From Ramazzottius varieornatus (taxonomy: Eukaryota; Animalia; Tardigrada), in assembly GCA_001949185.1 (NCBI GenBank), contig BDGG01000019.1, positions 213,231 through 277,230 on the forward strand: DNA of 64,000 nucleotides. Reading direction: 5' to 3'. Shown here piece by piece: positions 934-64,000 of this stretch (position 1 is its first letter; the number at the start of each line of letters is the position of its first letter). The notes beneath the pieces were generated by a model. It had not been told where the DNA came from. It made no database searches and was given only the letters and a program-made list of their open reading frames with translations. The translations under genes and the position numbers were made by a program.

Positions 934-1182
934 CATAGGAGTGATAAGACTGTGCAAAATCAATCAACCGCTCATATTTGGTCTTACATTTCAGCCTCTC
1001 ACATTTTATCCTGCAACTTTTAACTTTCAACTTTCAACTTTCGAGATCAAATCTCCTTGACCGTCTCTAGTTAGACACTTTTTGTGGTTTCTTTTTGCGC
1101 CAAAGTCACGTTCTTTTAGACGGGGATTAAACTGTCGAGTTACGTTGTTGCAAAATGCCAAAATCGGAATAAACTTGCGCGG

Positions 1183-3256: not shown

Positions 3257-3518
3257 AATATCCCTTTCGTATTCTTCGGCCGAGCTTTCTTCGTACTCTG
3301 TGAAGACCGTAGTATCAACGGCAGCTTTTCCTGAAACTAAGATAAATTCGCTATAACGAAGAGTGAAGAGTCCGCGCGTTTATATTTTCATGTTGAAAAT
3401 AAATTTGGACATATGTATCTGTGACTGCTTCAAGCTAGAAAAAGAGCTATAAAATTGTCGGCAGCTATCGTTGCACGAAACTGAAAAGAGAGCGTTTCAA
3501 TACAAGACAATGAAGAGA

Positions 3519-7407: not shown

Positions 7408-8742
7408 TCAGTATAACGGCCACACAGAAATCAGGCCATCTTTTCCTCCCAGGACCACACAGTTCCGTTCCCTCACCATCGCGTACTCGATGCACTGCAC
7501 CGTGTCCTTATGCATATCAAGAACGGCAAGTGGCTTCAACGCTTTCCAAGAGTATATTCTGGCTGTGAAGTCCCAGCTGGATACAGTTACGATCTTGTTG
7601 TCCGGTCGGATCTTCACGTCACTCACTCCGCTGGTCGACAAGGAAGTGCTGTCGAGAGGGTCGAGACCCGTCGGAGTGATCTTGAACCGCCGAAGGAGGT
7701 TGCTGGTTCCTCCGACGATGAGAAGGTCGCGGTCCGTGTCGACGTCGAGAGCCAATGGAGTAAGTGCGCCGAAGTCTTCATCACAGTGTACAGACCTGGG
7801 TGAGCTTGTTCGGAAAGCGGAGGAGACGAAAACGGGAAGGGAAGGTGAGCGAATGTCCCACAGGAGCACGTCGCCGCTTTCGTGGGCAACGAACAACTGT
7901 CGGTCCTGAAAATGAACAAGCGCTAGTGGCGGTTGTAAGTTTGTCACTAACAGTAAAACTCCGTAGAAAAAATACCGCGAGTGGCTGAACGGGAATCTCT
8001 TTCTATAAAATTTCGGGGTGGCTCTGGTACCAAAGAAACGACTAAAGTTAGCCAGTAACCTCGAAGGTAAACCCGAAAACACATTTTTCCTCCGTTCGTG
8101 TCACATACCGGAGCATGACGTCAGGAAAAAGTCAGTATTACAGTCACATTACAATCTGAACTCAGCATGCCTTCATCAGCACAATGCGCGTATCTTGCCA
8201 ATTATCATTAATTTTACTTTGTATCTGGCGGCGCGCATCGGTGGTCCTATACACTCCTCCGGACAAAGAAGTGCCGCAGGCTCGAACGTTTCTGCGTCCA
8301 CCAGTCCAAGTGCGCTGGCATTTCTCGCAACGCCTCCTGAAGGTAAGGCAATCAATGCGGCTTCGGGAAGGTCCAGTGCGGGGCAGAATCCGAGTTGCTG
8401 CCCGGGCGAGCTTACCTGAAGTCGGACGGGTGTGCTTTCTGCTAGTCGCCACTTGTGCAGAGATCCGTTGCGAACTTGTATGCTCACTTCGTCTGAAGTT
8501 CTAGCTGAAGGAATGATAGAGAGAACGGTGTCGTTTTTCTCAGCGAGCTCGTCACAGCGGAATTTCGTCGAAAGTTTCTTTGTCGAGACCAGGTCCCAGA
8601 CGTAGACGAAGGTGTGAGTTGATCCGGAGAATAGTCGACCGGCCAGCAATCCTTCTGATTTGTAACGCATGCAGGAGACGGTTCCTTCGCTTCCATGAAA
8701 CGTCAGGGAAGGCTCCGGAGGAGGTAGCTTGTCAGAGGCCAT
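7408..8742 (-). CDS. GNB1L: WD40 protein GNB1L/Asa1 (PIKK biogenesis factor), 2 exons
   Basis: N-terminal LPPPEPSLTFHG and C-terminal GVSDVKIRPDNKIVTVSSWDFTARIYSWKALKPLAVLDMH...GGKDGLISVWPLY are typical of GNB1L. Confidence 0.88.
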
Positions 8743-38781: not shown

Positions 38782-40348
38782 ATGAATAACACAACTGGTT
38801 GTATGTTCAGGTCGAATGATTCCAGTGTCCCCTGCACCGATGTCCACAATACTAACTCTAACTTGCTGATCCAAATCGGTGACCCTCAAGAGACCATACG
38901 GGCGTTCTTAACCATCCCGATAGCCTTGATCGGTTCCCTGGGGAGCTGCGGTTCACTATGGTCGATCTGGCATGATAGTCTCCACCAGAAGACCACGGCC
39001 AACCTGATGTTCGTAAACATGTCTATCGCCACTTTATTCTTATGCGGCATCCATAACTCCATGGCAATTTACACCATTCTGACACCCTTCGAAAACGACA
39101 TTTTCCGCTATCCCCAGAACGACGGACTGTGTCAGTTCGAGTCCTTCTTTTACTGGGTGTGCCTGTGTGCTTGCTCGAACAGTCATGTCGTGACAGCGTT
39201 GGACAGGGTGCACTCGGTTTACCGACTAGGGCACCGCAAAAATTCTTCGTGGTTCTTAGTCGGAGTGTCATGGGTTCTACCTGTCGTTATCTCGGCGTTT
39301 CCGCTCTTCCACCTGGGCGGCGTTTACGGGTTCGCCGACGCGGCCAGACGTTGTGCTTTTGTGAAGATGGACTCTAAAGCCTACAGGGTCGCTTACAAGT
39401 TTATCAGCGGCATCATTCCTCTCCTACTCATGGTACCGTGTTATATGGCCGTGTTCCACAAAGTCTACCTGTCGCAGCGGAGAGTGCAACAGTATCCCGT
39501 ACAAGGTAGAAAACCCTAAATTATGTTCTCATGCTCTGCCCGTTTATCTGAAGTTTACCAATTTAGTAACTGCTTGGCAAATGAATTCGCGCGGATCGTT
39601 TTTCCAAATAGCCCACGCACTCGGTCAATAACGATGATGACGTGTGCCACTTGAGACAACGATCTGGCTGGGATCATTCACTGAGGTTCTATTAAGTGAA
39701 AGATGTTAATACTGTAGCTGAAGTCTGCTTTTTGATTTTCAGTTATAGGGAGAAACCGGGTTGATACGAATATGCGACGTGCCCAAGACTATCGTCAACG
39801 AGTCCACCAAATGCGGACGGAGGTCCGTATGTCCAAAATTGCCGGTATTACCTGCCTAATTTTCATCCTGTGCTTCCTTCCGGCATCAATTTTTGGTATC
39901 GTTGCTGCGCCCATGTTGGCTCATTCGCAGTCTTCTACGTCCAAGTGGCTTCAATTACTGCAATGGTTTGGTACGTTAATTAAGGTGCCACCGATTACGC
40001 TCAGCACGCCAGGCCTAGGCGTGCCTCGGCCTGGGCGTAATCAATTTACGCAATCAACTTTGATTATGGCGAAATAATCTAGCCGGTATGAATTACTGAT
40101 ATTATCTGATTTTCGTCTTTTCATTGTCAGGTTGCGCCATTAGCCCAGTGGTATACCTCTTGTTGAACTCAACCTTGCGGCACCATGCCGGGACACAGTT
40201 CTCCAGCCTCTTCGGATGCGATAAAAAGCGCCAAAAGGCCGTAACCCGCTTCAGCCTGCAAAGTCTAGCTGGACCGAATATGAATCTTGAACCATCTCTC
40301 ACGGTATCTTCGCAAGAAAGACTTTTGAGCTTGATTCGGAAATACTGA
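38782..40348 (+). CDS. Class A (rhodopsin-like) GPCR, 3 exons
   Basis: Seven hydrophobic helices, N-terminal NxT/S sites, TM3 Cys (LCQF), ALDRV (DRY-like), CFLP in TM6 and ISPVVY (NPxxY-like). Confidence 0.88.
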
Positions 40349-42047: not shown

Positions 42048-43569
42048 TCAGAGGTCCGGTAAACCAGCAGTGATCGAACTTTCAATGCCACAGTGATTTG
42101 AACCTCGAAGAATGCGAAAGAAGCCAAGCTCGCCCCAGTGCGGATTCCACGAGTTTGCAGCCAGCCAGTAAGGTACACCATTTTCCTCTCCCCATCCCAG
42201 TAGTTTTACAGCATGTTGTCCCAAGCTCTCACCGCGCTGTTGCTGGTATACTCCTAGAAGCAAGCGAATAACCGTCATCACGTGCGTCAAAGAAACTGTA
42301 TGTGCATCTTTAGTACCAGAACGGTAGGTGTAAAAGTCGGCGAAGACATTGAAGGCTGCTACCACTGGTCCATGAATCATGATTTCCGCTTGGATCTTTT
42401 CCGCGCTCCTCCCAACCGAATATGCTTCCGCACCTAACAAACAAACTCACTCACTAACTCGGAAGTAGAATAACGATTATGTGACTCTGTTGTTGGTCTA
42501 ACATGTTTTTGTAGACCGAGTTTTGAACTTCGAACAGACTCGCCGGAAGCTAGCTTACCGAAATGGAGGTCGCTCTTGTACGAGCGACCGAATGAGCTGA
42601 TGCATTGTTTGGTGCAAGCAGGAAGTGGTTCGTCTTCGTCAGGACAGGGACCAAAGGGTCCAATAACGTGGTGCTCGCAAGTAGGAAGTGTATAAGGTCG
42701 ACAGCCCTCGTTGCTGTTGAAGTTTCCGCCACTAACTATTCCCGTGCTGACGTAATAGTCCCAGGCGGAATCCGGATAGCCTCCACCACACCTACAGACA
42801 GATACTCGTCTTGGTACCTTTACGGGCTTTAGTAAAATCGCCATTCTAAATACCCAGAGCCACAAGAGAAAGTACAGCAAGACAACAGGTCTTCAGCAGA
42901 GATGTGAGTCTGCTTGTTGCCGTTCGAAGCAATACAGATGCGATCAGTGGCGACTTCCGCTGTCGACAGTGCCTGCAGCAAATATTGCCAATATCTGTGG
43001 TGAATTTGGAGGATTGAAAAAGCTGGAGTTAGGTTACCCAACAGGAGCCGCAAGAACCCTGGTCACGAATCTCGCTAATGGATGGGCAGTTGGGCCATCT
43101 TGTCCTCGCGTCGAAAGACTTGGGTATATTCTTCACTCGAACTCGGTTCTTGAGCGAAGCTTCGGACGGCAGTGTGGCAGTGAGGTTGGAGCGAGGTAGC
43201 ACTCCCAACCGACGTTTGATATGCAATAGTTTGACATCGTCCAGATAACTGTTGCCCGCCTGCAAGAAATATGGTTTGTGTTTGCCAATAACATTGGCAG
43301 TCAAGAAACGTTGTTGATACTACAAGCAATGTAACGACAAACCTTCCATGTGGTGTTGAGCTTATTGATGTCACTGTAATAATGCGGCAGCTTAGTAGGC
43401 GAATATCTGGCCAGGTACGTATGGAGAATGCGTACCTGATTATCGGAGTGGAGACGGTCTTGAACAAGGAAGTGTTCTCCGTTTGGTAGTATCCTGCACT
43501 TCCAACGTTTGCAAATGTTGTGATAGAAAGTACGATCAGCTCGAGATAGATCAAGGCCGCTAGGAACAT
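42048..43569 (-). CDS. CTSB: Cathepsin B
   Basis: Signal peptide, propeptide [41 protein letters not shown], occluding loop [15 protein letters not shown] and AANSWN. Confidence 0.95.
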
Positions 43570-44441: not shown

Positions 44442-47400
44442 ATGGCTGGCCACATCAATTGGATTGCGCTATTGGTTTTATTGCCACTGACCGGACAGAC
44501 GCGCAATGCAGATGACAGGGAAATCACTGACCTCCTGCACTCGTCAAACTTTTCGGTACGAGGCTGGTACGACCAAATGGAGAACGACGCATTCCTCGTG
44601 CGTCCAGACGTCGTGCGAGCAGACGCAATTGAATTAACGTGTTCGAAGGAGGTTTGGAAGAACACCACACCGAACATGACGCAAGAGGGCATAAATCTGG
44701 ATGCCGACTCCGATTTCAGTGCAACCTACGGATCTTTTGCGTTTCGAGCTCAGCTACCTGTCAAGGGTTACGGTAGTGCCGAATTCTCTCTAGTATCGAC
44801 GGACTGTCCTTTAACCAACTGCACCACCGCACTCAACGGAAGAACCACTGGGCTCCTTTTGTACGAGGACTCACCTAGGACCGTCGAAATAAAGGTGAAT
44901 TACCTCAACCCAAATATTCCCAGCCAGCTTTTGGCTCAGGCAGTGACGGTGGATCGACCAAACAGGACAATTTCGGGGTTTCACGTCTATGAAGTATCAT
45001 GGTCGCGGAACTTCGTGGCATGGTTTTTCGACGGCACCATGGTCGCAAACTTCACCAACCGGCTATTACTTCCGCGGACCCGACATTTTGCCCGGATCGA
45101 ACTATACTGCCTGAACAATACTATGAACCAGGCAGAGCGAGAAGAGACCACGTTAGCGGTGGACAAAATTACCTATCAGCGGATGCCTGATGGTAAGCCC
45201 TTATAATTCAGTTCTGACTCCGAGGCGACGTACACTGATGTTAATTAGGGCTAAACGCACTAAACAGGAGACGGCAAACAGCTTCACGACGATTGTCATC
45301 CCAAGTGGCGCAGTTTCCCTTGTTAGTCGCTGGAAACGTGCGCCGTACGAGATAACGACCATCCCAAGATTGTGAGCCGGCCTCCCACATATAATATACA
45401 GATTGTGAGCGAAAGCGCACTAGCACAATTCGATAAGCACAGGACCATCGTGACATCATGGGAACAATGTCGTCTCGCAGGCGCTGTATTAAAAGGGTCG
45501 CACAATGTGTACATATGACGACACGATGTTCCAGTGCGTATCAAATTGTGCTGGCGCGTTTTCGCTCGCAATCACTATACTATAAGTTCTTATTTCTCTG
45601 GTTTATTACAGATGAAGTTTGGAAAGACACACAACAGTCACTTTTTCCTGCGCCCGCAGTTACATGGAACGAAACGTCGGTGGGACCTGTCCGAGAAGTA
45701 TACTTGTTCGCCTATGACGACGATGTTGCGATGTACTTTGACGACATTCGAACTGTACCGGGATGCAACTGTAATAAGACTCTCGATGATTGGGTATTCA
45801 ATTTCGTTGGGGATGCCTGGCGCTACGTCAGCCAAGCGTACCGACTTTTGAATTTGACCACGGACCATCGCCTGCAGGCCTTGCTTTACGTTGGGAAAGG
45901 CGAAGGATGTCATTTCATGAGCCATCTCGGACGTTACTCTTACGTTCTGAACTGTGGAAGTAACGATAGCCGCGCCTGGGACGTGCAGACAGACTCTCCG
46001 GTGAAAGCTTCCCTCAGTCAGGCAATTACTAATTTGACTGTACTTGTTGCCGGAGGAGTTTATGGCAACCCCATGCTGTCTATCGATCAGTCCGGAATAG
46101 TACAGGGCATTGTGCAGTATGATCTGTTCCGGTCGTTGAACGAAGTGGACTTAGCTAGATCACTTTTGTCTTTGAAAATCAACAAGTTTCAGAATGCTCC
46201 TCGAAGTTACTCGTACTGGTTGCGCGACTGGTATCTGCCTGTTTACTCTGACCATGGTCAAGCCGCTGTTCTTCAGCGGGTTTTTACTCTTTTGGCGGAG
46301 CACTTCCCCACCATAACCGACAGAAGCGGCATGCGGAGGTATTCGCGCAACATGGCAAATCTGGCGGAACTGGTGCACTTCTGGAGCGGTGCGGCGAACG
46401 CCAGTCTACGGACTGTTGCAGGGAATGCTTTCGGCTGGTCAAAAACGGACGAAAAGGAACTGCTGCAAGCACAAAACGACTTTCCAGATATTCATTATGC
46501 AGACGACGAAAACTATTTGATGACGCAGGCCACTGTCTCGTTGGATCTCGTGGAATTTGCAACGCCGACACACAGTTCGACGCAATTTACGCAATTGAAT
46601 TTCACTCTTCTACAGAGTATCTTGATTCCCCTTGTTATTGTCACTACTGTTGGGACACTACTTGGTTTTTACTGTGCAAGAAGAAAGCGGAGCCAGGCAA
46701 AGGTTTTGGGCGCTAACCAGAAGGCGCCGAACAAGTACATTTCATCAGTACCGCTGTCGCACTTGAACCCCGACATTATCAAGCTCCTCGATGACGACAC
46801 CAAGAGGTTCCTTTTACCATCTCGCAACCTCCAAAAAATTAAGTGTGGAATGTCTACTACAGAATGTTGAAGGAGGTTGGTTACACATCAAAATAATCTC
46901 ACTATTCTATGTAAGTGTTTTATAGGTCCGGTCGTACTGGGAGAAGGTGAATTTGGGACGGTACATGTTGCCGTTGCCACCGGCCTCTACGGAACGGTTG
47001 GTTCCGTGTCAGTAGCTGCCAAAGTACTCATGCGACACGCCGGCGGCGAAATGGACAGTCTTATGGCCATGTTTGTGCACGAAGTTCGCGTCATGATTAG
47101 AGCCGGACAACATTTGAATCTGGTAAATGTGCTAGGTTTTACGCTTGACGGTAAGTGGACTCTTTTGACCAAACACAGTTACAGTTTCCGGGTGGTTAAA
47201 TTTCACCGTTCAAAATCGAACAATATTCCAGAAAATCCAACACTACTTGTCGAGCTGTGTGACATGGGCTCACTACTTGCAAATCTTCAGCAATGCCAAC
47301 GTGATCCTACGAAGTTTGTAAATTTGCTCGACAGTGGAGAAGACTGCAGCACCAGGACGGATGGCAGTGAAAAAATTCACTACGACCAAGCGCCCTCTGG

Positions 47401-48770
47401 GGGAAAGGTCTTGGGCGACGATGAGCGAGACAAATCGTGCAGTTTATCAACATCTGATCTCGTCAGCTTTGCATACCAAGTTAGCCGTGGAATGGAGCAC
47501 CTCAGCGCAAAGAACATTGTTCACAGGGATATTGCCTCCCGAAATATCCTACTGACGAAGAAAAAAGTCGCCAAAATATCAGACTTCGGTATGGCGCGCT
47601 GGTCTGAAACAGCTTATATGATGACGTCGGCAACCGCAGTGGTAAGTGACATCAATAGTCCTCCTCACGACGAGCTGTTTATGTCGCAAACGGTTGATCT
47701 AAAATTTGAGTTTGCTTGATCAACGGAAATTAGTCGTGAGTGAGGCAATATTGCGTTTTTCGAAAGTCTCGGAAATGTGCGAGTTTTACGGGGTAGGTTT
47801 GTAGGTAAACTTTGCCTCCTGACTAGGCTGAAGCTCATGGTTTTCTCTCTGGCTAGTCTCTGTCTGTCGATATTCCCGACACTAATAGGTATCAAGAAGC
47901 CCATACGTGAAACGGTATCTCGCAACGTGAAGCACTGTGCAGACAGAGATCAGCTGACAAATGAAAATTTGAAATTTTGAGTCAAGTGTGCAGAGAATAA
48001 TCCGTTTTCACTTTCAAGATAAGCTACTCGAGGGCTGCTTATCTTGAAAGCGAAACTTCGTAATCCGCTTTAAAACATCAACACAATCGACGGAGTTTTA
48101 CGGCCTGTCGTGAGGAGGACTAATGCTACAAATGTCGGAAATGCATCCCTTCCCGTGATCACGTGACGTGGGCTCCCGTTGGTCAATGGTGTAACACCAC
48201 GTGGCCACGGGAAGGGATGCATTTCTTGCAGTGCAGTCCATCAGAGGTTTCTCCAATAACCACATCGGAATCTTGAAACTGTCTATTTTAGAATTTGCCG
48301 ATAAGATGGATGTCACCCGAAACGATTGCATCCATGATATTCGACCAAAAGAGCGATGTATGGTCCTACGGTGTGTTGCTGTGGGAAATGTTCTCTCTAG
48401 GACAGATACCATACCCCAACGTTGCCGTTGCTGGAAGGGTCGAACAGTTTGGCCAATGGTTGTTGGCCGGTAATCGCCTGGATAGACCGCAATTCTGTCC
48501 AGATAACGTGTAAGTCCTGAGTCTTGAAGTTAAAACGGCCAGTATGACTTCAAGCAGGAAAAACCGATGCTATATATCTCGTGTAGGTTTGCCGAAATGG
48601 GAAAGTGCTGGAATAGAAATGCGGCTGATCGTCCAAGTTTTGCTGATTTGAGCGTTAATTTCGAAGGAATAATATCGACAGATGTTGCAGGATACTACAT
48701 GCATCTGAATGAGCCCTACGCACAGTTTACCAAAGAGCTCTTCAAGCCCGAAACATATGTATATCTTTAA
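44442..48770 (+). CDS. Receptor tyrosine kinase A: signal peptide, GH16-like domain, microbial-type domain, TM, split tyrosine kinase (exons ~44442-45192, 45612-~46844, 46926-47149, 47232-47641, 48292-48508, 48588-48770)
   Basis: Signal MAGHINWIALLVLLPLTG. GH16-like YGSFAFRAQLP and GFHVYEVSWSRNFVAWFFDG. TM ILIPLVIVTTVGTLLGFYCA-RRKR. Kinase motifs GEGEFG, VAAK, HRDIASRNILL, DFGMAR and LPIRWMSPE. Confidence 0.88.
45396..45582. mobile_element. MITE in intron 1 of RTK A
   Basis: About 55-bp imperfect inverted termini (GATTGTGAGCGAAAGCGCACTAGCACAATT / AATTGTGCTGGCGCGTTTTCGCTCGCAATC). Confidence 0.7.
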
Positions 48771-49114
48771 TTTTTGTTGAACTCGAAAGTTACGCGGTGG
48801 AAGAAAACACCGGCCTCGTGCGTGCAAGTCGCGTCTGTATCCTTGTCGGATTGACTGTTAGAAGTCGCCGTCGCATCGGTGACCGCCGTTGACGGAGGTA
48901 ACTTTTCCAGAGTTCTAGCCCAGACGACGTCAACCAGACAAGATGACAACGAGCTTCTTCTGTCAGAGTCGCAGACAACCATAAGATGAGAAACGTAGGT
49001 TGGGCAAAACACTAAGAGCTGGGAAATGAAGGTTGCAGCCACGGTAGCTGTCTGCAGTCTCAATGGTTCGCTGCCCTGTCAATCGGTTGGCTCTTCCCTG
49101 GCATGGTCGAAAGT

Positions 49115-52100
49115 TTACAGTGAGGCATTGCTGAAACTAACGCGTTGGCGCAGTCCATCCAGTTCTATGTATTGAGCGTCATGAGTTTCTCTAAGAATCG
49201 CTATCTGATAATAGGCCATCAGCTTTGAGAATCCCGGTCGATCGGTGCTTTGAATGGACCAACACATCTTCATCAGATCGTACCTGCAGAATTAACCACT
49301 CAGCAGTCCCCAGGGACGGAAACAATTTTGCAGTGCTTACATGGCGGTGGGACAAAACCTCGGTTGTTCCAAACGATGGCCATCCTTGAGCCACCCTTCA
49401 AACTCGGTGATGCGGCCGGCAATGCTCATGTTGGAATAGGGTAGCATCCCCAGAGAAAAGATCTCCCACGCTAATACGCCGTACGACCACACATCAGTAC
49501 TCTCATTGAAGGACAAGGTGGACAGAGTCTCCGGCGCCATCCATCGTACCGGCATAGGAGCCTAACAGATTCAAGGGCATAAATTCCTGTACCAGCCACC
49601 TTCCTGAGCGCTGCTACGAAATGGTCGCATTTAGATTTTCTTACCGTCTGCTTGCCTTTAGAATGAACGTAGCTCTCCTCGTACAAGCGAGCCATGCCGA
49701 AATCGGAAATTTTGGCAATCCTGGTTTTTGTTAGCAGAACGTTCCGCGCAGCCACGTCTCTGTGGACAATGTTTTTGGATGATAGGTATTCTAGTCCACG
49801 ACAGGTCTGATAAGCGAAATCCACAAGGTCGCTGGTTGTAAGGGTTCCAAGCAAGCTTTCTCTTGCGCAGTATGCCGACTCGTTCAATGCTGACGGTGCC
49901 AGGTTCAGGGAAGCTTTTGGACAGGATCGTTCAAGTGGCACTGGTCCAGCTATGTTACCGTCTTCGTCCAGCTCATTGACGTAGACATTCGGTGACGATC
50001 GAACGTACTCCAGACAGGACAACAGTGACCCGAGCTCGCATAGCTCGAGCAACAGGGTGGGATAGTCTGGTGCCAGGGAACAAAATGGCGTTGAGTATCT
50101 GATCATGCACTGGTCAAAAAAACAAAGTAATCAACTTGACTGTACTTCTCACCGCCTCCTACGATACCCAGAAGATTCACTAAATTTCGGTGTTGTCCGG
50201 CTTTGATCATAGTCCGTACTTCTTGTTCGAATAAGGCCTTCAGAATTTTATCGTCTTCGGCCAGTCGTGTATTGAGAACTTTTGCCGCAACTGGAACACT
50301 GTCTTCCATGCCCGGTAGTCCGAACGCCACAGCTGCGTACACCGTCCCGAACTCTCCTTTTCCAAGAATAATCAGGCCTGGAACGAAAATATAAGATTAC
50401 GCTCTGTGAGGCTCAGAACACGGAAGAAGACTACAGGCGGCAGCTCAAGCCAACTCGCCCTTCTCTCAAAGTGGCGCAGGCTACCAGCTAACGTCACCGA
50501 GAAGGTGCGCCTGATGAGCTTACTTCTCTGCAGCTGACTCTGGGAAATCACGAACCGCCGGAGCTCTCGGCCAACCAAGAAACCATAGTCTTTGGCTCCG
50601 GTGAACTTCTTCAGGAGTTCTTTGCGACGTACAGTTCTTCGGTGGTAGAGATATAATACTGCTGCAACTAAGGCCACCACGAGAAAGGCTGATACCAGAA
50701 TTGCAGTCAGCAGTTTCGTGCTGGTGGCCATTGCCGACGCAGCATTTTCCAGGTCGTCGTCCAGCACCGAAGCGCCGAACTCTGAGCCCATCTGTTGTGA
50801 ATAGTGAATTTTAGGGAAAGCCTTTTGTGCTCGTCGTAAATCTTTTTCGTCCTGCGCGGACCAACCGAAGGCGTTCCTGGTCAAATTTCTGAGGCTCATG
50901 TTGGCAGCTCCACTCCAGAAGTGAACGTACTCCCCCAGATTGGTCATGTTTCGCTTATATCTTCGGATCCCATTGTCGTCTGTGTCGGAAGGAAAGTTCT
51001 GAGTCAGAATCTTAAAATATCGTGACAAAACGTTGGCTGCGCCGTACGCGTCGTACAGAGGTAGGCACCAGTCCCTCAACCAGCAAGAACCATCACAAGG
51101 AGAAGCAAACGACAGTTGTGAGTTATTGTTGACAACTTGCTGCGCTTGCGTTGTTTGGTTGAGCGTCAGAAACAGATCGTATGCTATGATGTCTTGCAGT
51201 GCTGTGCCGACGGATGGTAAGTTTTGTTTACCATAAATTCCACCTGAGCTTCCGACAACGAAGTATGACAATGCCAGACCAATGTCAAGTTTCGCTCGTA
51301 TGTTTCGCTTATCCCAAGACCACGCGGTAGTATCATTACTGTCACAAACTAAGATACTGCGGCGACCGTACGTGCTTTCCCGTTGCAGAGATGTGTAGCA
51401 TCTTTGCGGAGTTCCTTCACGGAAAACTACGTAGAGGACAGATTCGCCGCGTTGATGCATTGGCCCATACTGTCGACAAAAATAAGCCCATGCGTCCTGG
51501 ACGTACAAAAATATCCAACGGTCTCCCTTCGCGTAAATACCGTCACCTGCCGTTGGTATATTTTGCATGCGTTCGAAGTAAATTGCGAAGTCATCAGTGT
51601 AGCTGGACAAGCTGACGACACGTTCCTGATCTGACCAGTAGTCATTCAAGGTTCGAGGCGGAGGTATCCGGGTCTGCGCGTTTCCTTCCCATTTTTCCTC
51701 TGCAAACAACATATAGTAAAGTCCAGGTCTACACCTGTCAGAGCAATGCAGAAATTCTGTACGTGTACACGCGCGAAGGGAAAGTCTGGAACAGTAAAAA
51801 GTTTGGAACAGGCGATTCCGAAACAGCGGAACGGAAGTTCGTACGTACTTGTGCAATTCACACTGATGCACTTTTTGACAATTTTCTATGGTTGAATTCT
51901 GAATTTGCCGTCGTTTTCGCCTGTTCCAAACTTTCCCTTCGCGCGTGTACCAACGTTACCTATGTTGACAACTTGTTCCAAAATGTGTTTGAAACGCAAC
52001 GTACAACGGCACACGGTGCACTTACGGCCAGGTAATTGTCTATAGTCCATTTTTGAAGAAAGGAAGACAGCCTCTTGGTTCGGCTGAAGGACAGTTTCGT

Positions 52101-52767
52101 CTGCACAACTGACGATTATATCCAGGACCTGATCACCAACTGGAAAAGCCAGCTGGTTAGTAAAATTGACCACGTTGTCGTTTATCTTCCACGCCAGGAA
52201 CTTTTCCGACCAAAGCAACTGAATCAGTTGGAATCCATCCAGATCTAACTGCGGTTTCTCGACATTGAATTGGTTGTTATCCACGTAGAGTTGATTAGTG
52301 GAATGCGGATCAGGAAATAACATGTAGATGTTCTGCCATGACAGGTTCTTTCCGTAAAAGGTCACCCCTGTACTCATCCTCTGAAATTTCGAGCAGATAG
52401 GTTGCGCACACATAGCGGAACTCAAGCCAACGTCCACCTCAGTCGCTGCACCACCTGGTAATTTGACTCGAAAATCCAGTAAGCCATACTCGAAGGCAAA
52501 ATTTCCGTTGGTACTAACCATCCAGCTCAAGGTGCCGTTGGTGTTGGATGCCGATTGATTCCACAAGTCTTGAGAGCATCCCAGATTTAGTGTATTGTTT
52601 ATGAGATACCTCTCCTTCTCCAAACGCGATTCTGCGCCTGCATGCCTCTCGTACACGGTGAGAACGTTAGAAATGATCAGATTTACAGAATGCGGCTCGC
52701 TGGGATAGCCTCTGACCATAGAAAGGCAAACTGCTAACAAGAACTTCTCAACAGTCCGCCGAGACAT
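49115..52767 (-). CDS. Receptor tyrosine kinase B, paralog of RTK A (exons 52767-52026, 51699-50524, ~50377-50151, ~50068-49645, ~49561-49340, ~49284-49115)
   Basis: Signal [31 protein letters not shown] and [30 protein letters not shown]...[41 protein letters not shown]. Kinase motifs [27 protein letters not shown] and MPVRWMAPE. Confidence 0.88.
51764..51949. mobile_element. MITE in intron 1 of RTK B
   Basis: GTACACGCGCGAAGGGAAAGTCTGGAACAG is inverted against CTGTTCCAAACTTTCCCTTCGCGCGTGTAC. Confidence 0.8.
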
Positions 52768-54067: not shown

Positions 54068-57000
54068 TCAAAGGTACGGCGCCCAACCAACATACCTAAA
54101 AACAACAGTACGAACTGTAAGAATTCGGCCATCCACTGAAATGTCCAAGAACCTTGGCGACCACATACATTCTCGAAAGATTCCGTTCGGTGGTCGCTTC
54201 CCGAATCAGATAGTTGACTTCTCCTTGCACTGACAGAGCCACACTATCCGACACACCGCTAATCTGGCCAGTTATTCGCTGTTCGATTTTCAGCAAGTTA
54301 GCCACGGCAAGCTCGTTTACCATCTCTCCACTTTCACTCTTTGTACCTGCAGAGTTGAGAAAATTTCCCATCAGTACACGCCCATTTTCGGTCAGTATTC
54401 CGCCAACTCGACCCAGACACCCCAGAGACCACACACACGCACAAAAGAACAGTAAGACTGCACCTTTTCCTTGCCAGTCGACCAGCGGATCATGTACGAA
54501 CGTCTTGAGTACACCCAACATCGTATTCTTCTGCTCCCGGATCACCTTCAACGTCAACTCACAGGCGGTGCGGAAGAAACCTTCCACGCCCAACGGACCC
54601 ATGGCGTCCACAATGTTATGCGTTAGTCTGAAGAGTCCAAACAAAAATAATTCTCAAGAAACGAAAGCAGACGGAAGCCCTGCAAAAAAACTCCACAATG
54701 TCGCTTTTTCAAGCGGCGCACCCTGTCGGCCAACAGTACCGGTAGCGCGCGCCACTTGAGATAACGATCGAGCCGAGTTTTCCCAGTGCCGCACTCCATC
54801 GGCCAACAACAATGGAAGCGTGCGCCACGTGGGAGCAACACTCGATAAGGTCGTTTCTCCGAGTGGCGCATGCCCGCGGTCAGTAATACTATTAGCGTGC
54901 ACCACTTGAAAGAACAATCAGTCGAGTTTGGCCACCGAGCTCTCGGATACCACAGGACGGAAACTGACGGACCTGAATGGGACTCTTTCAGGTACTTCTA
55001 GTCGTTCGCCATTGTTGAACAGACAACTAAAATCCACATGCAGAATTTCCCCATTGGTTTCATCAATGAGGATATTCTCGCTATGTCGATCCCCCAGGCC
55101 CATGATATACCCGACAATACTCATGACCGCCACGTCCCTCGAGAAGTTCAGTCTGGCCGTCAGCCACTCCATAGAATCCGCGAACTTCTTTTGGAACCAA
55201 ATGTGGAAGACGGGCGGGTAGGCCGCCAGGACTTTCCTGAAATTAGCGATGCTTTCTTCGATCGGCCTGTTTGGGTTGTAGTTGAGCGTCTTGAAGATAG
55301 GATTGTGAGGATCTATTCGAGTGTCTTTGTATGTTTGGATGAGTATGGCGCGTATGGGCCCCACGTTGGGTACCCATTCGAGAATACCGCAGTCCTCGTT
55401 AAGGGGAACGACGAAGTAGGAGCGGATCTTCAGTTGACGCTTGCGGCACTCGGCATCTTCGCGCAGGAACTTCTCGACAATGTTGATCAGGTCCATGAAG
55501 CGGCTGTCCTTGCGGAGGTCGTCTTTGGGCTTGCAAAGCAGTGTGTAGGTCTGTCCATTCGAGTCGATGAGGGAGACCTGCAAAGACAAGCAACCTTACC
55601 ATCCACTCACAAAGACCCGTATTTGGAGCAGTACAAGGTTACAATCTAAAACATGAGGAGAACCGGAAGGTCGGCAAACAACCGCGAGAAAATTATTTTC
55701 TCAGCTGGCGCACGTTTTCAGTGATGTCGGCCGCAGCCATGCGCCACTTGATAAAACGATGCTGTTGTGTTTCTTTGCTACATCAAGTGACGCACGGTTT
55801 CGGTGAAACTACCTGGAAAAGTGCGCCACATGGAAAACTGATCTTGTCGAGTTTGTACAGTGGCGCACGTATTCGGTATCAATGGCTAGAACTGTGCACC
55901 ACTTGGAAAAACCCATCTGACCGAATTTCCTCACCCAGGTTGCAAGTTTCAAATTCTAAGGAAAGTACAAGTTGGTTTAGGGTACCTTTTTGGGTTTCAT
56001 GAGAGAAGGCATGTAAACAAACTTGTCCACAAACTCCCGAATGGTGGGCAGAGTGTCACTGAAGGCTTCGTGTTTCTGCTGGTACCCGTCCGTAGGGAGG
56101 ATGGGGTTCATGAAGGCGCTGAAGGGCAGGATGGGATGGAGCCAGTCGTCCTCTTTCAACAGGCGACGTAAGGTACGTGTCTCACCACACTCGGAGAAGC
56201 TGTCCGTCTTGGAGTTTCCCTTGGGCTGGATGTTACACAGCACGGCCAGCTGGGAACAAAAGTCTTCTTTCTTGGTCAGAAACGTCAGTAACGGAGCCGG
56301 CTGATCTTTCCTCACCAACTCCATAATCCTCTTATACCTGGAAACGAAAACCACAACTGAAGAGATGTCGTATGGAATTATCGCGCAAAAAATGAAAATT
56401 ATTCTGAATGGGACGTCGCGGAAAATGACTTGATCATGGTCGTTTTCTGGCGCACACTGTCGGTCAGTAACAGTGATAGCGTGCCCCACTTGAGATAGCA
56501 TCATGTTCAATTCAGCTGCCGATGTCCCGAATATCGCAAAACGTAAAAAACTGAGAAGACTCTACCTGTCCTTCCTTGTTTTCTTCTTGGACAGGTTCAG
56601 CGGTGCCAGATGCCACATGGCCTGTTGCGGGAAAGCTTGGGTTGTCTTTGCGATGATTTCCGCCAATAAGACGAAGGCTTGTTCGTTCGGGTGGCATATC
56701 CTCGAAATCAGCTGCGGCATCGCCGTGAGGAAAACGTACTTCGGGATCCTGGCCAGTCCCTCTTTCATAATACTAACAAGAGAAACGAGCCATCACTTCC
56801 TCAAATTCGTACGACGGTCAGGTGCCGTGAAAAAGACATTCACACCTGCGTAAGTTGTTGAACTGTTCCTGTATTTCCTTCGGTGCTGTATCCTTGCCCT
56901 TCTTGAAGGGGTACTCATACGTGAACAATGACGAGAAGTCCAACCATAGCGTCAGCAGCCTCGGCAGCGACTGATGGACGAAATGACAGCCATACTTGAG

Positions 57001-60000
57001 CGAGTTGACAAAGTCGCCCACGACCAGTAGGACCTGATCACCGTAGACCTTGAACTCCTCCTTGGTGACTTTGGTGCTCTTGCCCTCGAGGACCTTATCG
57101 CGATACTGACCCAAGTAAAAGTGGCTCTTCTCCACATTGGGCATTAGTTTCACCACCTCGCTAAACTTCTCCACCATCTCGGTTGTCTCTAAGCTCTTGC
57201 TCTCTTCATAGTACCTATAATGACAATTTACAGAATGTGATTTTGCGCTATTTTATTCGAGACATCGGGAAGTGAGCTCACCCAAGTTGTCACCTCAGGT
57301 GGCGCACTGTTTAATTGCTATCGGCTGGAAGCGTGCGCCACTTGGAAAAGAAACCGACTTGGTCGATTTTGCTTGCTTTACCAAGTGGCGCACGTTCCAA
57401 TGTTATTTACTAAAACCGCGCGCCACTTGGAAGGCGAATTTCTTTGTCGACTTCCCATTCCTTATTGTTTTTTCTTTATCACACTCCTTATTTTTTTTTT
57501 GTTCGTTTATTTATTGAACTTAACCAGTACCTGGCCAACAGCAATTTGGTTTTGGCGAACAGCGGGGAAGTTCGAGCGAGGTCGGACCACGAGTCGTTGC
57601 GGACGACTTTTTCCAGTGAAGCAATGGCTTGTTCTTTCTGGCCCTTAGCCCATAACCACTTGGCTTGTTCGGCTGGTAGTTCGGGTGGTGAATAGGCACT
57701 GGCGTTGAGGAGAAAACTGTAGGCTGTTTGGAGATGTTGAGACTGCCGAGCCACCTTGGCGCTGTGCAGCCAACAGTTGCCGATCTCCAGACGGAGTTCC
57801 GGTCGCTCCGTAGCTTCGAGAATGATGCGACGGACCGTCAGGATCTTCTGGATGTTCGCGTAGGATGGTTGTGCCAGCGCTAGCCTGCAACAAGACCATA
57901 GCCTTAGTCTTTACAGATCGTACAAAATCGGCATGGCATCGTTCCGTGAACTTCCTCCAAGCGGCGCACCTTCTCAGTGCTATTGACAAGAACCGTGCGC
58001 AACTTGGAAAATCCGATCTCGTCGAGTTTGTCTGGTTTGCCAAGCTCTCGTATGATAAATAGCCCACTTTTCTTTCAGTAAGACAATCGGTAATTTTAGT
58101 CTGCCTATCTTACCTCGTTTTCCACTCAGCCAGAAGTTGCGCTCCCGGCTTCACAACGAACTTCATCTCCTCGTCCGGCTCGATTCCGAACCACGTTGTG
58201 GCGCCTTCCTCCAGCTCTTGTAGCGCATGTAGATCTACAATTTGGTCGTAACATCGATGGTACGCTCGCTTCTGCATACTGGCAGCACAAACGGGCGCCA
58301 TCATCTGCGCCCGAAGGTTCCCCATCGTCAGCTGGAAGTCAGCCGAGTCGCCTTTCTTACAGTCCAACAGCAACCTACCCACTCCCACACTCCATTTATT
58401 CGGTAGCTGCCCAATCGGCTCATTCTCCAAATGATTCTCCAGCGCACCTGTGGACATTTATCAGGAAAATATAAGTACCAGATAACAGGTTGAAAGCTAG
58501 GCAAAAGAGCCTGACTAGATCGTTTATCCAAGTGGCGCACAATTAAAGCAAAAACACTAGAACCGTGCGCCACTTAGGAACAAAATCCTGGTGAGCTTTT
58601 TTGCCGAACTACTGTAGTTGTGAAAAGTGAACTTCCTGTTACATTTATCAGTTCCTCTCAGGTTTAAATCTTCAATCAGATGTTCACAAGAAGAAGAGTG
58701 TCTGAGGAATATTCAAAGTACCCCATTGGCTGAGTTTCCATGCTGCTTCGATCCGGAGCTCGTTCAAGTCATCGATCCAGTCCAGGTGTTCGCTAAGGAT
58801 GCCATTAGAGCATGACAATGCTGTGTTGGCTTCGTCGAGACCCAGGAGGCACCTCACGACATGCCTATGGTTATCGGGCTTGAACTGGCTTTCTGGGAGT
58901 CGCGCGAGCTGCTCGAAGCACGACAGCGCTTCTTGGATGTTTCCATTGGAAAGATGAAGGATGGTCTGGTCTTCGATGGAAGGTTCACAGGTACGCATGC
59001 TGTTGAGACCGGTGATACCGTCGGTCTCGTCCAGCGCCACGTAAATACTCTAGGAAAAAAACACAAAACGACAAAATTACTTCTGGGGGAAAGTATATTA
59101 GAAGTCTGGGGAACGAAACATACAAAATTGTCTTCTCACGTGCCGTACACTCTCGGCCAAATATCAATGCAAAGCGCGCCACTTTATGCGACAATCTTGT
59201 ACGTTTCGATCAAATTTTATGTATAAAATATGAGCTGACCTGTAGAAATTCCAGTTGTTCCTTCTGGTCTTTCCATCTGTTCAGCGACTTGTCCTCCAAC
59301 CTCAAGAACTTCTCATAATGGAACATGGCTCTCGCGTAGGCTTTACAGCTGAAGCTAGCCCGTGCCAGCAGTTCGTCATCGACGCTCTCCACGAACCGCT
59401 TCACCGACTGCACCAACTCCAAACAGTGGCTGCTGGTCGCATGGCTGGGTGAGATGTGCACCTGCTCGTCCCGCACACACCTGGCCACGACATCTTCTTT
59501 CTTGCTCCACTCAAACAGAAAGTCCAGCAGGGAAAGGATGGTTTGAGTGGCCAGTTGCTGGTAGTCGGGATGGAAGTCTGACGGCCTTTTGTACGACTCA
59601 AGGACCTAAAAATAAGCCGAATACAACCTTCTCAAACTAAGATCATTCCAGCTCAAACCTGAACCAATCTCGCAGACCAGCGTACATGTACCCGTAAAGT
59701 TGTCTCTGCCCACATGTACGCAGGTCTATGATAGAACCCAGTGCACATGCGGCGCGCGAGAAGGCAGAATGGTAACGTGCGCGTCCTTCACAAACCTGCG
59801 TACACCCTTGAAGACAATTACATGTTCAAGGGTACGCAGGTTCTTGACGAACTGAGTGATTTGAGCGGGAAGGTGCGGTAACGGTTCCACACACCGTTGT
59901 AATTTCGAAAGCGAGGTCTTGTTTGAACGCCTCGTCACAGTGAACCATCAAGTACAGCACGATGTACGGCAAAAGAGACACGCTACGGTTCACATCATCT

Positions 60001-63000
60001 TCCACCAGCACCGCACATCTCTTGAGGAAGTCGGCGGTGGCCGTCTTGGTGTCGATCCTGTCGATCATGGAGGATGTCCAGTGGCGAATCCAGCCTTCAA
60101 AAGTTGTGTAGCTGTCAAAGAAAGGGCCTTTGGCGTACTCGAAGGTGCCTCCACCTCGAACGGTGTACTTTGAGGATAGGAAAGGCATCAAGACTTCATG
60201 GTAGTCCGGCGTCAGCTTCTGCCAGATGGCAGAGTTCTGCATCTGCCTACTGAGAGGGCCTTTCTCGTCGCGCAGACCGTAAAAGAAGAGGGCTTGTTGA
60301 AGTACTACTCCACACGTGTTTTGTGTACTGCAAGAAAACATTAATTAGAAAATTCCGCAAAAGTCTGTGGCCAAAAGTCCAGATTATTCCAAAAACTATC
60401 GCGGATAACTCAAGACCAACAGAGAACTAATGAACGTACTCCGTGTGCTCGGAAGTCATGTAACCTTTGACGAGGTCTCGAAGGAACAATTCGGCAAACT
60501 CCTCATCTTGCACACTGGAAAACACCTTCCACCGCGTCGTAGAAGCCGCACTGCTGCTTTCGACATCTTCCACCCTGCAAAGGAAAAAAACACCGAAATC
60601 CTTGTCAGACTAGTGACTCAACTGCGTCACCGAAAGGCGCCAGAAGGGAAAAGGGTGAGAAAGAAACTGACCAGTCTGGGTCCACGGCGCCTATCGAACC
60701 GAGTACTTCAGCGAACCTCTGCCGTTCCGTATTGGTCACCGCGTCGCGACAACAGTCCATCAAGGTGGAAATCAGCCTTGAGATGTCGCTTTGCTTCGCG
60801 ATGCTGCTACCAGCACGCGACGTGGCTCTTTGGTCCGATTCTTCAATCAGCTGATGCAGGGAACCCTACAACAAAACAAGTGTTATCAAAACCTTCAAAC
60901 TGAGGACTTGACAAACAACCTCGGCAGAATCGTTTTCCTAAGCGACGCACGCTGTCAGTGTTATCAGCTTCATGCTGGCGCTACTTAGGAAAACGATGTG
61001 GTCGAATTGGGTGGTCGGGCTGCCGATTATTTTGCAAAAGCCACAGACAAAGACTTACCTGGCTGTTCCGGATAAGAGTGCGCAGCTTCCTCAAGGCGTG
61101 CTGTTTGACTTCCATCTGAGGGATCCTTAGCCTTCGAGCTTCACTTGCTGTCAACTGGGTACTCAACGTGTGAGTAGCATTGTGGCTCCGGTCCATGATA
61201 TCCACGAACTGGACAGCATCCATCAGGTACTTCGGGAAGCGGTTGGGAATGTCCGGCTGGTTGATGTAGTTGGCCAGCGTATCGTTGACTTCTTTCAATT
61301 CGGGAATATCGGGAAGGAAGAACAGCTCCGGAAAGTGGTCTCGCAAGCTCCGCTTGTTTTTCACGACGAAGTACTCGAAGATGGGCACGACAAACTCGGG
61401 GTTCGTCTTGACAAAAGGGACGAGAATCACGGCGATCTGGCTCAATATTGACTCTGGAAATGAGACCAAAAATGTTTTATCCTCTTCGATCCACTAAAAT
61501 TTATCAAGACAAAAAAACACTCGTGCAGCCGATAAGACGGCAGCTGGGCAAACAAACTCGACAAAATTGTTTATTAGATGGCGCACGCTATTATCGTTAT
61601 GGGCTGGAAGCCTCCGTCACTTGAAAAACAATCTTTTAAAGTTTGTTGAGGTCGCAAAAATCATTCACCGACAGTTTTATCGTTTGGTTTCAACATTCTC
61701 TGTAAGGTTGTTATGCACTCTTACTCAGAGAAGCCATATCTAACGTCTCGACAAAGGCTTTCCACGCGCCAAAGCTTTGCGGGAGTAATTCAGCAGGTAA
61801 ATTCTGGATGGCAGTCTTCAGCGAAGCCAACAGCTTGGTGCGAGTGGAAGACATGTACTTCACCCCCATGAAGGTAATGAATCTAGCCAGACTGTCCAGA
61901 ACATTGCCCTTGTACTTCGCCGTGTTATGGGCCGAAGCTAACTTTGCATCCACAAAGAACAGAAAACTCCATAGTTTCCCCTGCAAATACTTTGCCACAT
62001 CGGCTTGAGTATTGAGCTCTACCGAGTTCTCCTGCGCCTTCGCCAGAAACTTCAATCCTTTGAAAACCTGCAAACCACAACGCTTAAATATTCAACACAG
62101 CTCGAAATCCTATCCCGGAGCTCGGCAAACAGACTCGGAAAGACTATTTTCCGAAGCGGCGCATAATCTCGATGTCATTAACTGGAAACGTGCGCCACTT
62201 GAGAAAACGAAGGATCTTGTCAAGTGTGTTTCCCAAGTTGCGCACCTTCCGGTCTTATTGACGTAGAGTGCGCCACTTGGGAAAACGTCGACTAATGTCG
62301 ATTTTTTTCCTGTCGAATTTTTCTGCCGAGCTCTTCTCTCTCGATAGACAGTTACCGGTTCTGGCTTGGTACACAAAAACAGGAGCAGTTCGTTATGCAG
62401 TCGACTATTATCCGAAGCGATGAGTTTGTTTCGAGGTTTGCTGGTCAGCTTCTCGACTAGTCGAAGTCCTTGTTCCAGTTCCGCGTCATCTTTTGCTTCG
62501 ACGATCATGATGGGCAGCAACTGTTCAAAAAACTCAAAAAGTAGTTTGCTTAGATCGTGGAGCGGCGATACTTCAGCGAGGAAAGTTAAGGCATCCACCG
62601 CAGCAGGGGAGCCACAGGCGATGAGAGGCTGCAGAAGGAAGGGAATGGACGTGCTGAGTAGCTCTTCGATGTCGCCGAACTTGAAGACGGTGATGACCGT
62701 GCTCATGATCGGGAACTTCTGCTCGTAGGGAGTATCAAGAAGACGGTGGGCAAGGTGGACGGCCAGTATGTCTTCGTACCGACGAAAGAATTCGGACGGG
62801 TGGACGGGGTGAAGTTCGTAGGCCAGCGTGATGCATCTTGTGGTCTGTACTCGAACCTAGAAAACCGCAAACGACCAAATTAACTGAACAAACGGATGTC
62901 GTCACGTTTCCTGCCTTCTGACACGATGAGATAATACGTCCCCCGCATGGCAAACTATGACGTCACATACGACGGGTGTTCAGTACATAGACAGAGGAAG

Positions 63001-64000
63001 CTTCCACGACGGCGGCCGACATCACGCAAGCGAGCTTCAAGATGTCCATGTAACAACGTATTTCCAACCGTACGATGACGTCACGAATCACCCTGACTAT
63101 TTCAGCAATGCCAAACAAAGTTAATCCTGAGGCAACAGGTAAAATCAGGCAGCAGGCAGGGACTTACGATAACCCAAGAACTCAACACTCCCTCAAGGAT
63201 GATTTCAGCAAACCCAGGCAGATCGTCGTCTTTTGATGAGAAGCGCAGAAGTAGATGGAGAAGTTTCAGCAGAACCAACTGACGTTTATCATCGCCAGTT
63301 CTGAATGATCCCAGCTGCTGGCGAAACCACGCCGAGACTGCCTTGAGGTACAGAAAGCGTGCTTTTGCTTCTGGACGTTCAGTGTGTAGCGGAACGGCGC
63401 GAAGAAAGTCGGGTAGGATTTCAGCAACGTCGGGATTCCGCCGCGCAGACAAATCCAAATCCTAGAAAAAGTCGAATGTAAGTTGTTCGCATGGTGAGGA
63501 TGATGATACAAACCTTCTTTATCTTCTCAAAACACTGAGCAGCGGTTTCTTCATCCTCCAGGAGAAGGGCAGGGTCAGGCATCGCGGTCGTCCACAATTT
63601 GTTCCCGTAATTCTGAAGCTCCAGCTTCGCTATCTTTCGTGGACTGCCGTCCCGGGAGCCGGTCATCTTACGTGCGATAGCTCTGACTCGACAGTTCAAG
63701 TTCCACACCACATCATCCCAACCGCAGAGCGTATGTGTACTCCCGCAAGCGATAAGAAAGACGACGCTTCAGCCAGACGCACATGAAGAACGATGAACTC
63801 AGCTCCAAGAACGGATTCTGGATTTGGAATGATATCGATGTGGAATCAATGGTAAGCGCCCCAAGGCCTGCCTTCATTCTGGTTATAAGCCACATCTTAT
63901 ATAGAAGACCCTGATGCTAGCAAGCTGGTCAGTGTTTAATCTATAGTCTTTTCGCTTACCGGAAGTTCGAGAATCAAAACGCGGGATTACTGGACAGCGG
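54068..64000 (-). CDS. ATR: Serine/threonine kinase ATR (PIKK), many exons; 5' end lies beyond the window
   Basis: UME-like segment, FAT repeats (LARASFSCKAYARA, QSLPRLLTLWLD), kinase motifs KPKDDLRKDSR, GLGDRHSENIL, HVDFSCLF and VPERVPFRLTHN, and FATC end NLSRMYVGWAPYL*. Confidence 0.95.
62118..62335. repeat. Abundant foldback repeat, two-hairpin copy in an ATR intron
   Basis: Termini GAGCTCGGCAAAC and CTGCCGAGCTC enclose two hairpin units. Confidence 0.8.

Follow-up and report, generated by a model that had tools for sequence, protein, structure and literature searches.

A putative receptor tyrosine kinase family in the tardigrade Ramazzottius varieornatus with an ectodomain of GH16-like and bacterial-type peptidase folds

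Receptor tyrosine kinase (RTK) families are defined by their ectodomains. The class III, IV and V RTKs (PDGFR, KIT, CSF1R, FLT3, FGFR and VEGFR) display a split kinase with an insert, the motifs HRDxAxRN and PxRWMxPE, and a single transmembrane (TM) helix. Two genes of Ramazzottius varieornatus, termed here gene A and gene B, have the same kinase and TM arrangement, but they carry no Ig-like domains and their ectodomain is predicted to consist of two inactivated enzyme folds, a GH16 fold (domain 1) and a bacterial-type peptidase fold (domain 2). The genes lie in a 64-kb stretch of contig BDGG01000019.1 (positions 213,231–277,230; contig 19), termed the window, and coordinates given without a contig name are positions in the window. 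They probably represent an RTK family whose ectodomain is undescribed and in part probably of bacterial origin.

Animal RTKs whose ectodomain folds are of the lectin type or the carbohydrate-binding type are known, e.g. Hydra “Sweet Tooth” and DDR1/2. These have C-type lectin or F5/8-type-C domains, whereas the window genes combine GH16 with a peptidase fold. In plants, the L-type lectin receptor kinases serve as surface receptors that sense ligands (review PMC7758398). As predicted for the window genes, a jelly-roll ectodomain of the ConA type is joined through one TM helix to a kinase in the cytoplasm. However, their ectodomain is a legume-lectin domain and their kinase an RLK/Pelle Ser/Thr kinase, in contrast to the GH16 fold and metazoan tyrosine kinase of the window genes, and the origin is independent. 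The GNBP/betaGRP/LGBP proteins share with the window genes a GH16 fold that is without the catalytic glutamates and is used extracellularly in a non-enzymatic role. These proteins are soluble and have no TM helix or kinase, and the insect forms carry an N-terminal CBM39; the window genes are predicted to encode membrane-anchored proteins with a kinase.

The account favored here, which is held with moderate confidence, is that each gene encodes a single-pass RTK, of a family found to date in this tardigrade and a close relative alone, whose ectodomain is formed by a dead GH16 fold and a dead bacterial-type peptidase fold, and which would signal by dimerization on binding a putative carbohydrate-bearing ligand.

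Gene structure and the split kinase

Exons were placed from a listing of open reading frames (ORFs) together with a reading of GT-AG splice sites. All sequence searches and folds were run exon by exon, never on joined spliced models, and the genome searched was a 55.8-Mb assembly of 200 contigs. Gene A (44442–48770, + strand) and gene B (52767–49115, − strand) are convergent six-exon paralogs with the following features (a slash marks the exon boundary at a splice site):

44442–45192, + strand: gene A exon 1; start codon, signal-like leader, domain 1 (~44562–45192); from the ORF, donor G/GTAAGC, Pfam, and AlphaFold (AF2)/Foldseek
45612–46844, + strand: gene A exon 2; domain 2 (45612–46588), TM helix (~46607–46675), juxtamembrane segment, first kinase residues; acceptor ACAG/, weak donor T/GTGGAA
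46926–47150, + strand: gene A exon 3; kinase N-lobe (GEGEFG, VAAK, alphaC Glu); Pfam PK_Tyr E-value 1.8e-32, ORF spanning exons 3–4
47232–47641, + strand: gene A exon 4; hinge, ~50-aa kinase insert, HRDIASRN, DFG, start of the activation loop; Pfam, translation
48292–48509, + strand: gene A exon 5; PIRWMSPE, DVWSYG, C-lobe; Pfam PK_Tyr E-value 9.1e-21
48587–48770, + strand: gene A exon 6; kinase end (CW..RP.F), C-terminal tail, stop codon; Pfam, splice sites, translation
52767–52026, − strand: gene B exon 1; start codon, leader, GH16-like domain 1; match to the paralog profile, no Pfam match of its own
51699–50524, − strand: gene B exon 2; domain 2 (51699–50726), TM helix (~50716–50648), juxtamembrane segment; donor A/GTAAGC, alignment to gene A
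50377–50153, − strand: gene B exon 3; kinase N-lobe (GKGEFG, VAAK); ORF, Pfam, splice sites
50066–49645, − strand: gene B exon 4; kinase insert and catalytic motifs; Pfam PK_Tyr E-value 7.7e-24
49561–49341, − strand: gene B exon 5; PVRWMAPE, C-lobe; Pfam PK_Tyr E-value 7.1e-20
49283–49115, − strand: gene B exon 6; kinase end, tail, stop codon; splice sites, translation

The exons sum to 3021 nt (1006 codons) in gene A and 2955 nt (984 codons) in gene B, with predicted products of ~1006 aa and ~984 aa. Intron positions and phases (1, 1, 1, 0, 2) are identical in the two genes, as is the length of exon 3 (225 nt), and all introns are GT-AG. Every exon is open in frame, the totals are divisible by three, and the split codons (derived by hand) are not stop codons.

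Both products are predicted to begin with a signal peptide, followed by a GH16-like jelly roll, the ~325-aa domain 2, a single TM helix and the split tyrosine kinase. Gene A displays a clear hydrophobic leader at the N terminus; that of gene B is weaker. Each gene displays one strong TM segment followed by basic residues (Kyte-Doolittle 19-mer mean of 2.15 in A and 2.88 in B), and the ectodomain exons contain N-glycosylation sequons, 14 in A and 11 in B.

The Pfam family PK_Tyr_Ser-Thr (PF07714) is found in the kinase exons of both genes (E-values of 1.8e-32 and 9e-21 in A, 7.7e-24 and 7e-20 in B). The kinase motifs are all intact in A and B, i.e. the G-loop, VAAK, the alphaC Glu, HRDxAxRN, DFG and PxRWMxPE. 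Between the hinge and the HRD motif, both genes have a kinase insert of ~50 aa in exon 4, and the Pfam kinase match extends over 229 residues for 153 model positions. Comparison of gene A exon 4 and of the paralog RvY_06820 with solved structures gave PDGFRA, FGFR1, KIT, FLT3, CSF1R and VEGFR as the closest kinases. In Pfam scans of exons 1–2, neither gene matched Ig, fn3 or any other family of RTK ectodomains. Judged from its sequence, the kinase is a metazoan PDGFR/KIT/FGFR-type split tyrosine kinase with complete catalytic motifs.

The original prediction for this locus had placed two genes at these positions with the order ectodomain 1, ectodomain 2, TM helix and kinase. It had also described the kinase as active-looking, insert-bearing and related to PDGFR, VEGFR and FGFR, without the Ig domains. 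The splice-site reading, the Pfam scans, the motifs and the closest solved kinases agree with it on these points.

The two ectodomain folds and the origin of domain 2

Domain 1 of gene A shows a short Pfam GH16 match just past threshold (E-value 1.2e-5). A profile built from domain 1 of A and B has ~15 matches in the genome, gene B included, and the contig 3 paralogs match the Pfam GH16 model with an E-value of 1e-23 at model positions 31–160 of 175. When a profile of 12 domain-1 family sequences was compared with solved structures, laminarinase ZgLamA (4bq1) was matched in two blocks, one on either side of the catalytic strand, with an E-value of 1.1e-11; weak pappalysin matches were also seen in the profile comparison.

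The AlphaFold model of gene A domain 1, made on the 12-sequence family alignment, has a predicted local distance difference test score (pLDDT) of 71 and a predicted TM-score (pTM) of 0.72. Its top Foldseek matches are all GH16 glucanases/laminarinases (E-value ~1e-9, probability 1.00, TM-score ~0.6). A language-model protein atlas also assigns domain 1 to GH16 clusters, with a score of 0.96.

The catalytic motif of GH16, ExDxxE or ExDxE, is absent from exon 1 of A and from exon 1 of B. In the stretch aligned to it, A has LLLYEDS and B has VTFYGKN. By profile and model, domain 1 is a GH16-fold module, and since the catalytic motif is missing it is predicted not to be a glycosidase.

Domain 2 has no Pfam or NCBIfam model, and neither do its bacterial relatives. 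An exhaustive HMMER search with domain 2 found 241 homologous clusters; beyond the tardigrade's own proteins the E-values run from 1e-53 downward, most being ~1e-43 or weaker. Most matches carry no taxon, and all that are named are bacterial (Sphingobacterium, Chitinophagaceae, Pontibacter and Paenibacillus). The multidomain relatives carry CBM6/35, CBM5_12, F5/8 type C, ricin B, fn3, beta/gamma-crystallin and BSP domains and type IX secretion system (T9SS) sorting tails.

In the family alignment, the zinc-site motif HExxHxxE is present in 107 of 141 members. In all six tardigrade copies, the HExxH columns are occupied by other residues that are neither His nor Glu, and HExxH is found nowhere in exon 2 of A or B. 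The sequence ELVHFW was considered as the lost HExxH site and rejected; it is a separate motif that is kept in bacterial homologs, and the HExxH columns are ~130 residues upstream of it.

The AlphaFold model of domain 2 has a pLDDT of 85.6. Structural comparison with VIA-align gave Z-scores of 12.4 for the M1 F3 aminopeptidase, 12.1 for AM0627, 11.3 for BT4244 and 10.9 for the M30 peptidase lugdulysin, with thermolysin also among the matches. Nearly all of the top VIA-align matches are zinc peptidases or their folds, and Foldseek gave weak matches of the same kind. Domain 2 was not assigned to the BSP family (PF04450), to which the link is distant and weak (hhalign probability 31%).

Sequence family and model together identify domain 2 as a zinc-metallopeptidase fold (gluzincin, thermolysin-like) that has lost HExxH. 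Its nearest known counterparts are secreted bacterial HExxH proteins, which by fold are near the M60-like AM0627/BT4244, M1 and M4, and which share with the tardigrade copies sequence homology, motifs such as WFRDW, and the fold. The bacterial proteins usually carry fused carbohydrate-binding modules or T9SS tails, whereas the tardigrade copies have no HExxH and are joined to a TM helix and a tyrosine kinase.

The original prediction had recognized a GH16 jelly roll in domain 1 and a microbial-type domain in domain 2. The Pfam match, the contig 3 paralogs, the ZgLamA profile, Foldseek and the protein atlas all point to the first. The second is supported by the named homologs and the architectures, which are bacterial, and can now be refined to a gluzincin fold without HExxH.

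Because both folds have lost their catalytic residues, they would most likely act as binding modules and not as enzymes. Thus dead enzymes may be recruited as receptor modules.

The relationship of the tardigrade copies to each other was examined by tree comparison. Five kinase-linked copies of domain 2 group together with a support of 88 in the SH-like approximate likelihood ratio test (SH-aLRT). The best tree obtained unites all six tardigrade copies; its log-likelihood is 99.8 above that of a quick free search, and its p-value in the approximately unbiased test (p-AU) is 0.958. A single shared origin of the six copies is thus not rejected by the sequences, and one acquisition appears to be the simplest reading because the tree with the six-copy clade has the better likelihood.

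The tardigrade copies sit in spliced animal genes on large scaffolds. A transfer of domain 2 from bacteria to a tardigrade, probably once, is likely from sequence comparison but not proven, since most matches have no taxon and, among tardigrade genomes, the search covered this one. If so, a horizontally acquired bacterial domain can join an animal signalling receptor.

A relative without a kinase is found on contig 4 at ~271448–272590 (locus L031, positions 5449–6591). Its domain 2 is followed by one TM helix and a tail that is short and basic, and the former HExxH site reads NEIGV. The ORFs upstream of it gave no Pfam match, including none to the beta/gamma-crystallin domain that is found in bacterial relatives. 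The bacterial domain may first have become established in the genome in a form such as this.

Family members in the genome

The family is not uniform in its ectodomain. GH16 is present twice in tandem in the members on contigs 3 and 11, and the window subfamily has domain 2 in the membrane-proximal position. RvY_06820 and RvY_06815, annotated as uncharacterized “protein kinase domain-containing proteins”, belong to the same family as A and B and resemble them in kinase type, in the phase-1 intron between TM helix and kinase, and in having a GH16-like ectodomain. They differ in having GH16 twice in tandem and no domain 2, and their GH16 is nearer to the Pfam model (E-value 1e-23, as compared with 1e-5 in gene A).

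Between A and B, the amino acid identity is 26% in domain 1, 38% in domain 2 and 48–58% in the kinase. The ectodomain thus diverges faster than the kinase, which resembles the pattern of environment-facing receptor families.

A counterpart of gene B domain 2 that is 85% identical and 91% similar is found in another public sample (P0002); gene B is therefore not private to this assembly. A metagenome scan with the domain-2 alignment yielded three loci at 25%–30% identity, none of them near enough to bear on the kinase fusion. Word-based protein searches with the whole RvY_18525 sequence (the public model of the gene A ectodomain) and with its domain 1 matched only the query itself, but given the limits of the tool these blanks weigh little.

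A partial copy of gene A is present on contig 10 at ~62409–63185 (locus L030, positions 6410–7186) and is annotated as RvY_14094 (230 aa). It matches the C-terminal 200 residues of gene A domain 2, together with the TM helix, at 98.5% identity. Its reading frame is broken immediately after the TM helix, and neither domain 1 nor a kinase is present in the vicinity. The locus appears to be a pseudogene or a partial duplicate of recent origin.

On contig 7, at 1.84 Mb, two receptors of the same type are arranged head-to-head (L023, positions 4800–8540, − strand; L032, positions 1060–5530, + strand). By eye, their domain 1 sequences are identical over most of the length, but domain 2 is only 69% identical. 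This contrast suggests gene conversion in the pair. In the L032 copy, the kinase motifs HRD and DFG are replaced by HKD and GFG, respectively, and the sequence points to a probable pseudokinase.

Literature searches found no paper on an RTK with a GH16 ectodomain, on the combination of a dead GH16 and a peptidase fold, or on these tardigrade genes. The claim that no RTK of this architecture has been described holds in this respect; however, GH16 together with PK_Tyr is already present in the databases, in RvY_06820 and RvY_06815.

Continuity of the receptor and its putative ligand

Several observations weigh against the reading of each gene as one receptor with a carbohydrate-bearing ligand. 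By exact protein look-up, the ectodomain of gene A corresponds to GAV08899.1 and GAV08900.1, i.e. hypothetical protein RvY_18525-1/-2. This public model (44442–46870) reads through the exon-2 donor to a stop codon and has no kinase, and the donor itself, T/GTGGAA, is non-consensus. Domain 1 of gene B on its own gives no Pfam match, and the region of the catalytic strand is both the least conserved and the least confident part of domain 1 (pLDDT <50 at model residues 88–93). Outside R. varieornatus the searches yielded no homolog of this architecture, and conservation across species was seen only for part of domain 2. In addition, it is the N-terminal CBM39 of the insect betaGRP/GNBP proteins that binds glucan, their GH16-like domain not being known to do so, and Pfam scans of the window genes gave no match to CBM39. 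The analogy drawn earlier with these proteins holds for a dead GH16 domain in a non-enzymatic extracellular role but is weaker than was claimed as to glucan binding.

The truncated public model of gene A has a parallel on contig 7, where the model of the paralog RvY_12498-1/-2 likewise reads through the exon-2 donor to a stop. Together with the weak donor of gene A and the natural kinase-less relative on contig 4, these models would fit a locus that yields a kinase-less membrane protein (a decoy or adhesion protein), the kinase exons being a separate or unexpressed unit. This alternative is regarded as improbable. The kinase exons have neither a start codon nor an N-terminal strand of their own; there is no Met before the G-loop, and the first Met of gene A exon 3 follows VAAK. 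The order of ectodomain, TM helix, short intron and kinase on one strand is kept at at least eight loci despite 20%–60% divergence (two on contig 19, two on contig 7, one on contig 4, two on contig 3 and one on contig 11). The intron between TM helix and kinase has the same place and phase (phase 1) at all of these, and no paralog with TM helix and kinase in one exon was found among the family loci. The public models of two paralogs, RvY_06820 (947 aa, with Pfam GH16 and PK_Tyr) and RvY_06815, splice this very phase-1 junction. In RvY_06820, residue 584 is the first with homology to PDGFRA, eight residues ahead of the junction at 592; the first kinase residues are therefore encoded in the TM exon. 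The end of exon 2 has a matching F/Y-hydrophobic-hydrophobic-P/S..L stretch in A and B. The R. varieornatus gene set combines ab initio models with transcripts assembled from RNA-seq (PMC5034306), so that an intron retained in an assembly would yield just such a truncated ORF. RvY_18525 and RvY_12498 thus appear to be annotations truncated before the kinase exons. On this reading of the sequences each gene very likely encodes a single receptor protein, and the public annotation is corrected in that RvY_18525 and RvY_12498 seem to miss their kinase domains. That one or both window genes are decaying duplicates without function is suggested by the decayed relatives, i.e. the frameshifted fragment of gene A on contig 10 and the HKD/GFG paralog on contig 7, but this is highly improbable. 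Both A and B keep six open exons, canonical splice sites and all kinase motifs despite their deep mutual divergence, and domain 2 of gene B has the close counterpart in another sample noted above.

As to the function of the single receptor, the ligand would be a carbohydrate-bearing molecule (a glycan or glycoprotein), for which microbes, fungi or food are the most likely sources. Binding would pair two receptors, and the paired kinases would then trans-phosphorylate the tyrosines of their activation loops and signal as in other RTKs. A glycan or glycoprotein appears to be the likeliest ligand because the families of both modules act on or bind such molecules and catalysis has been lost. Homologs of GNBP (GNBP1/3), PGRP-SA/SD and the NF-kB pathway are reported to be undetectable in tardigrades (PMC7056985). 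This reported absence, and the multi-copy, fast-diverging and narrowly distributed nature of the family, favor an environmental or microbial ligand. A glycan pattern-recognition role of A and B, as put forward in the original prediction, is plausible. A stronger form of this proposal is that they are true pattern-recognition RTKs, which would sense microbial, fungal or algal glycans or glycoproteins through both dead domains and signal by tyrosine phosphorylation, as an independent animal counterpart of the plant lectin receptor kinases built in part from a bacterial domain; this can be put forward only tentatively. A serious rival, although itself rather doubtful, is that A and B are real RTKs with an endogenous ligand (a cuticle or matrix glycoprotein, chitin-associated material or a secreted protein) and serve development, moulting or tissue maintenance. 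PDGFR/FGFR-type kinases, which include the nearest solved kinases, are normally found in developmental signalling; ConA-like jelly rolls, like dead peptidase folds, often serve in contacts between proteins (compare the weak pappalysin matches); and nothing in this analysis ties A and B to infection. However, a multi-copy family with fast ectodomain divergence that has so far been seen in no other lineage is unusual for core developmental receptors, and both ectodomain folds have relatives that bind glycans or glycoproteins or act on them. As tardigrades reportedly do not have the usual arthropod microbial sensors and NF-kB pathways, these multi-copy, fast-diverging receptor kinases with a glycan-type fold are a testable candidate for the sensing of microbes or food in this group.

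A papain-family (cathepsin B-like) cysteine protease gene is found directly upstream of gene A (42048–43304, − strand; Pfam Peptidase_C1, E-value 2e-26). Downstream of gene B is a large multi-exon gene for a PI3K-related kinase of the ATR/ATM/TOR type (54096–62706, − strand), which matches PI3_PI4_kinase at 54918–55589 with an E-value of 3e-48. An exon of a rhodopsin-family G protein-coupled receptor lies at 38782–39519 (+ strand; Pfam 7tm_1, E-value 8.5e-12). A 303-aa ORF at 4532–5443 (− strand) has no Pfam match and displays a signal-like leader and several Thr-rich repeats of ~35 residues (TDYLVSTT.KRIVTE); judged from these features, it may encode a secreted mucin-like protein.

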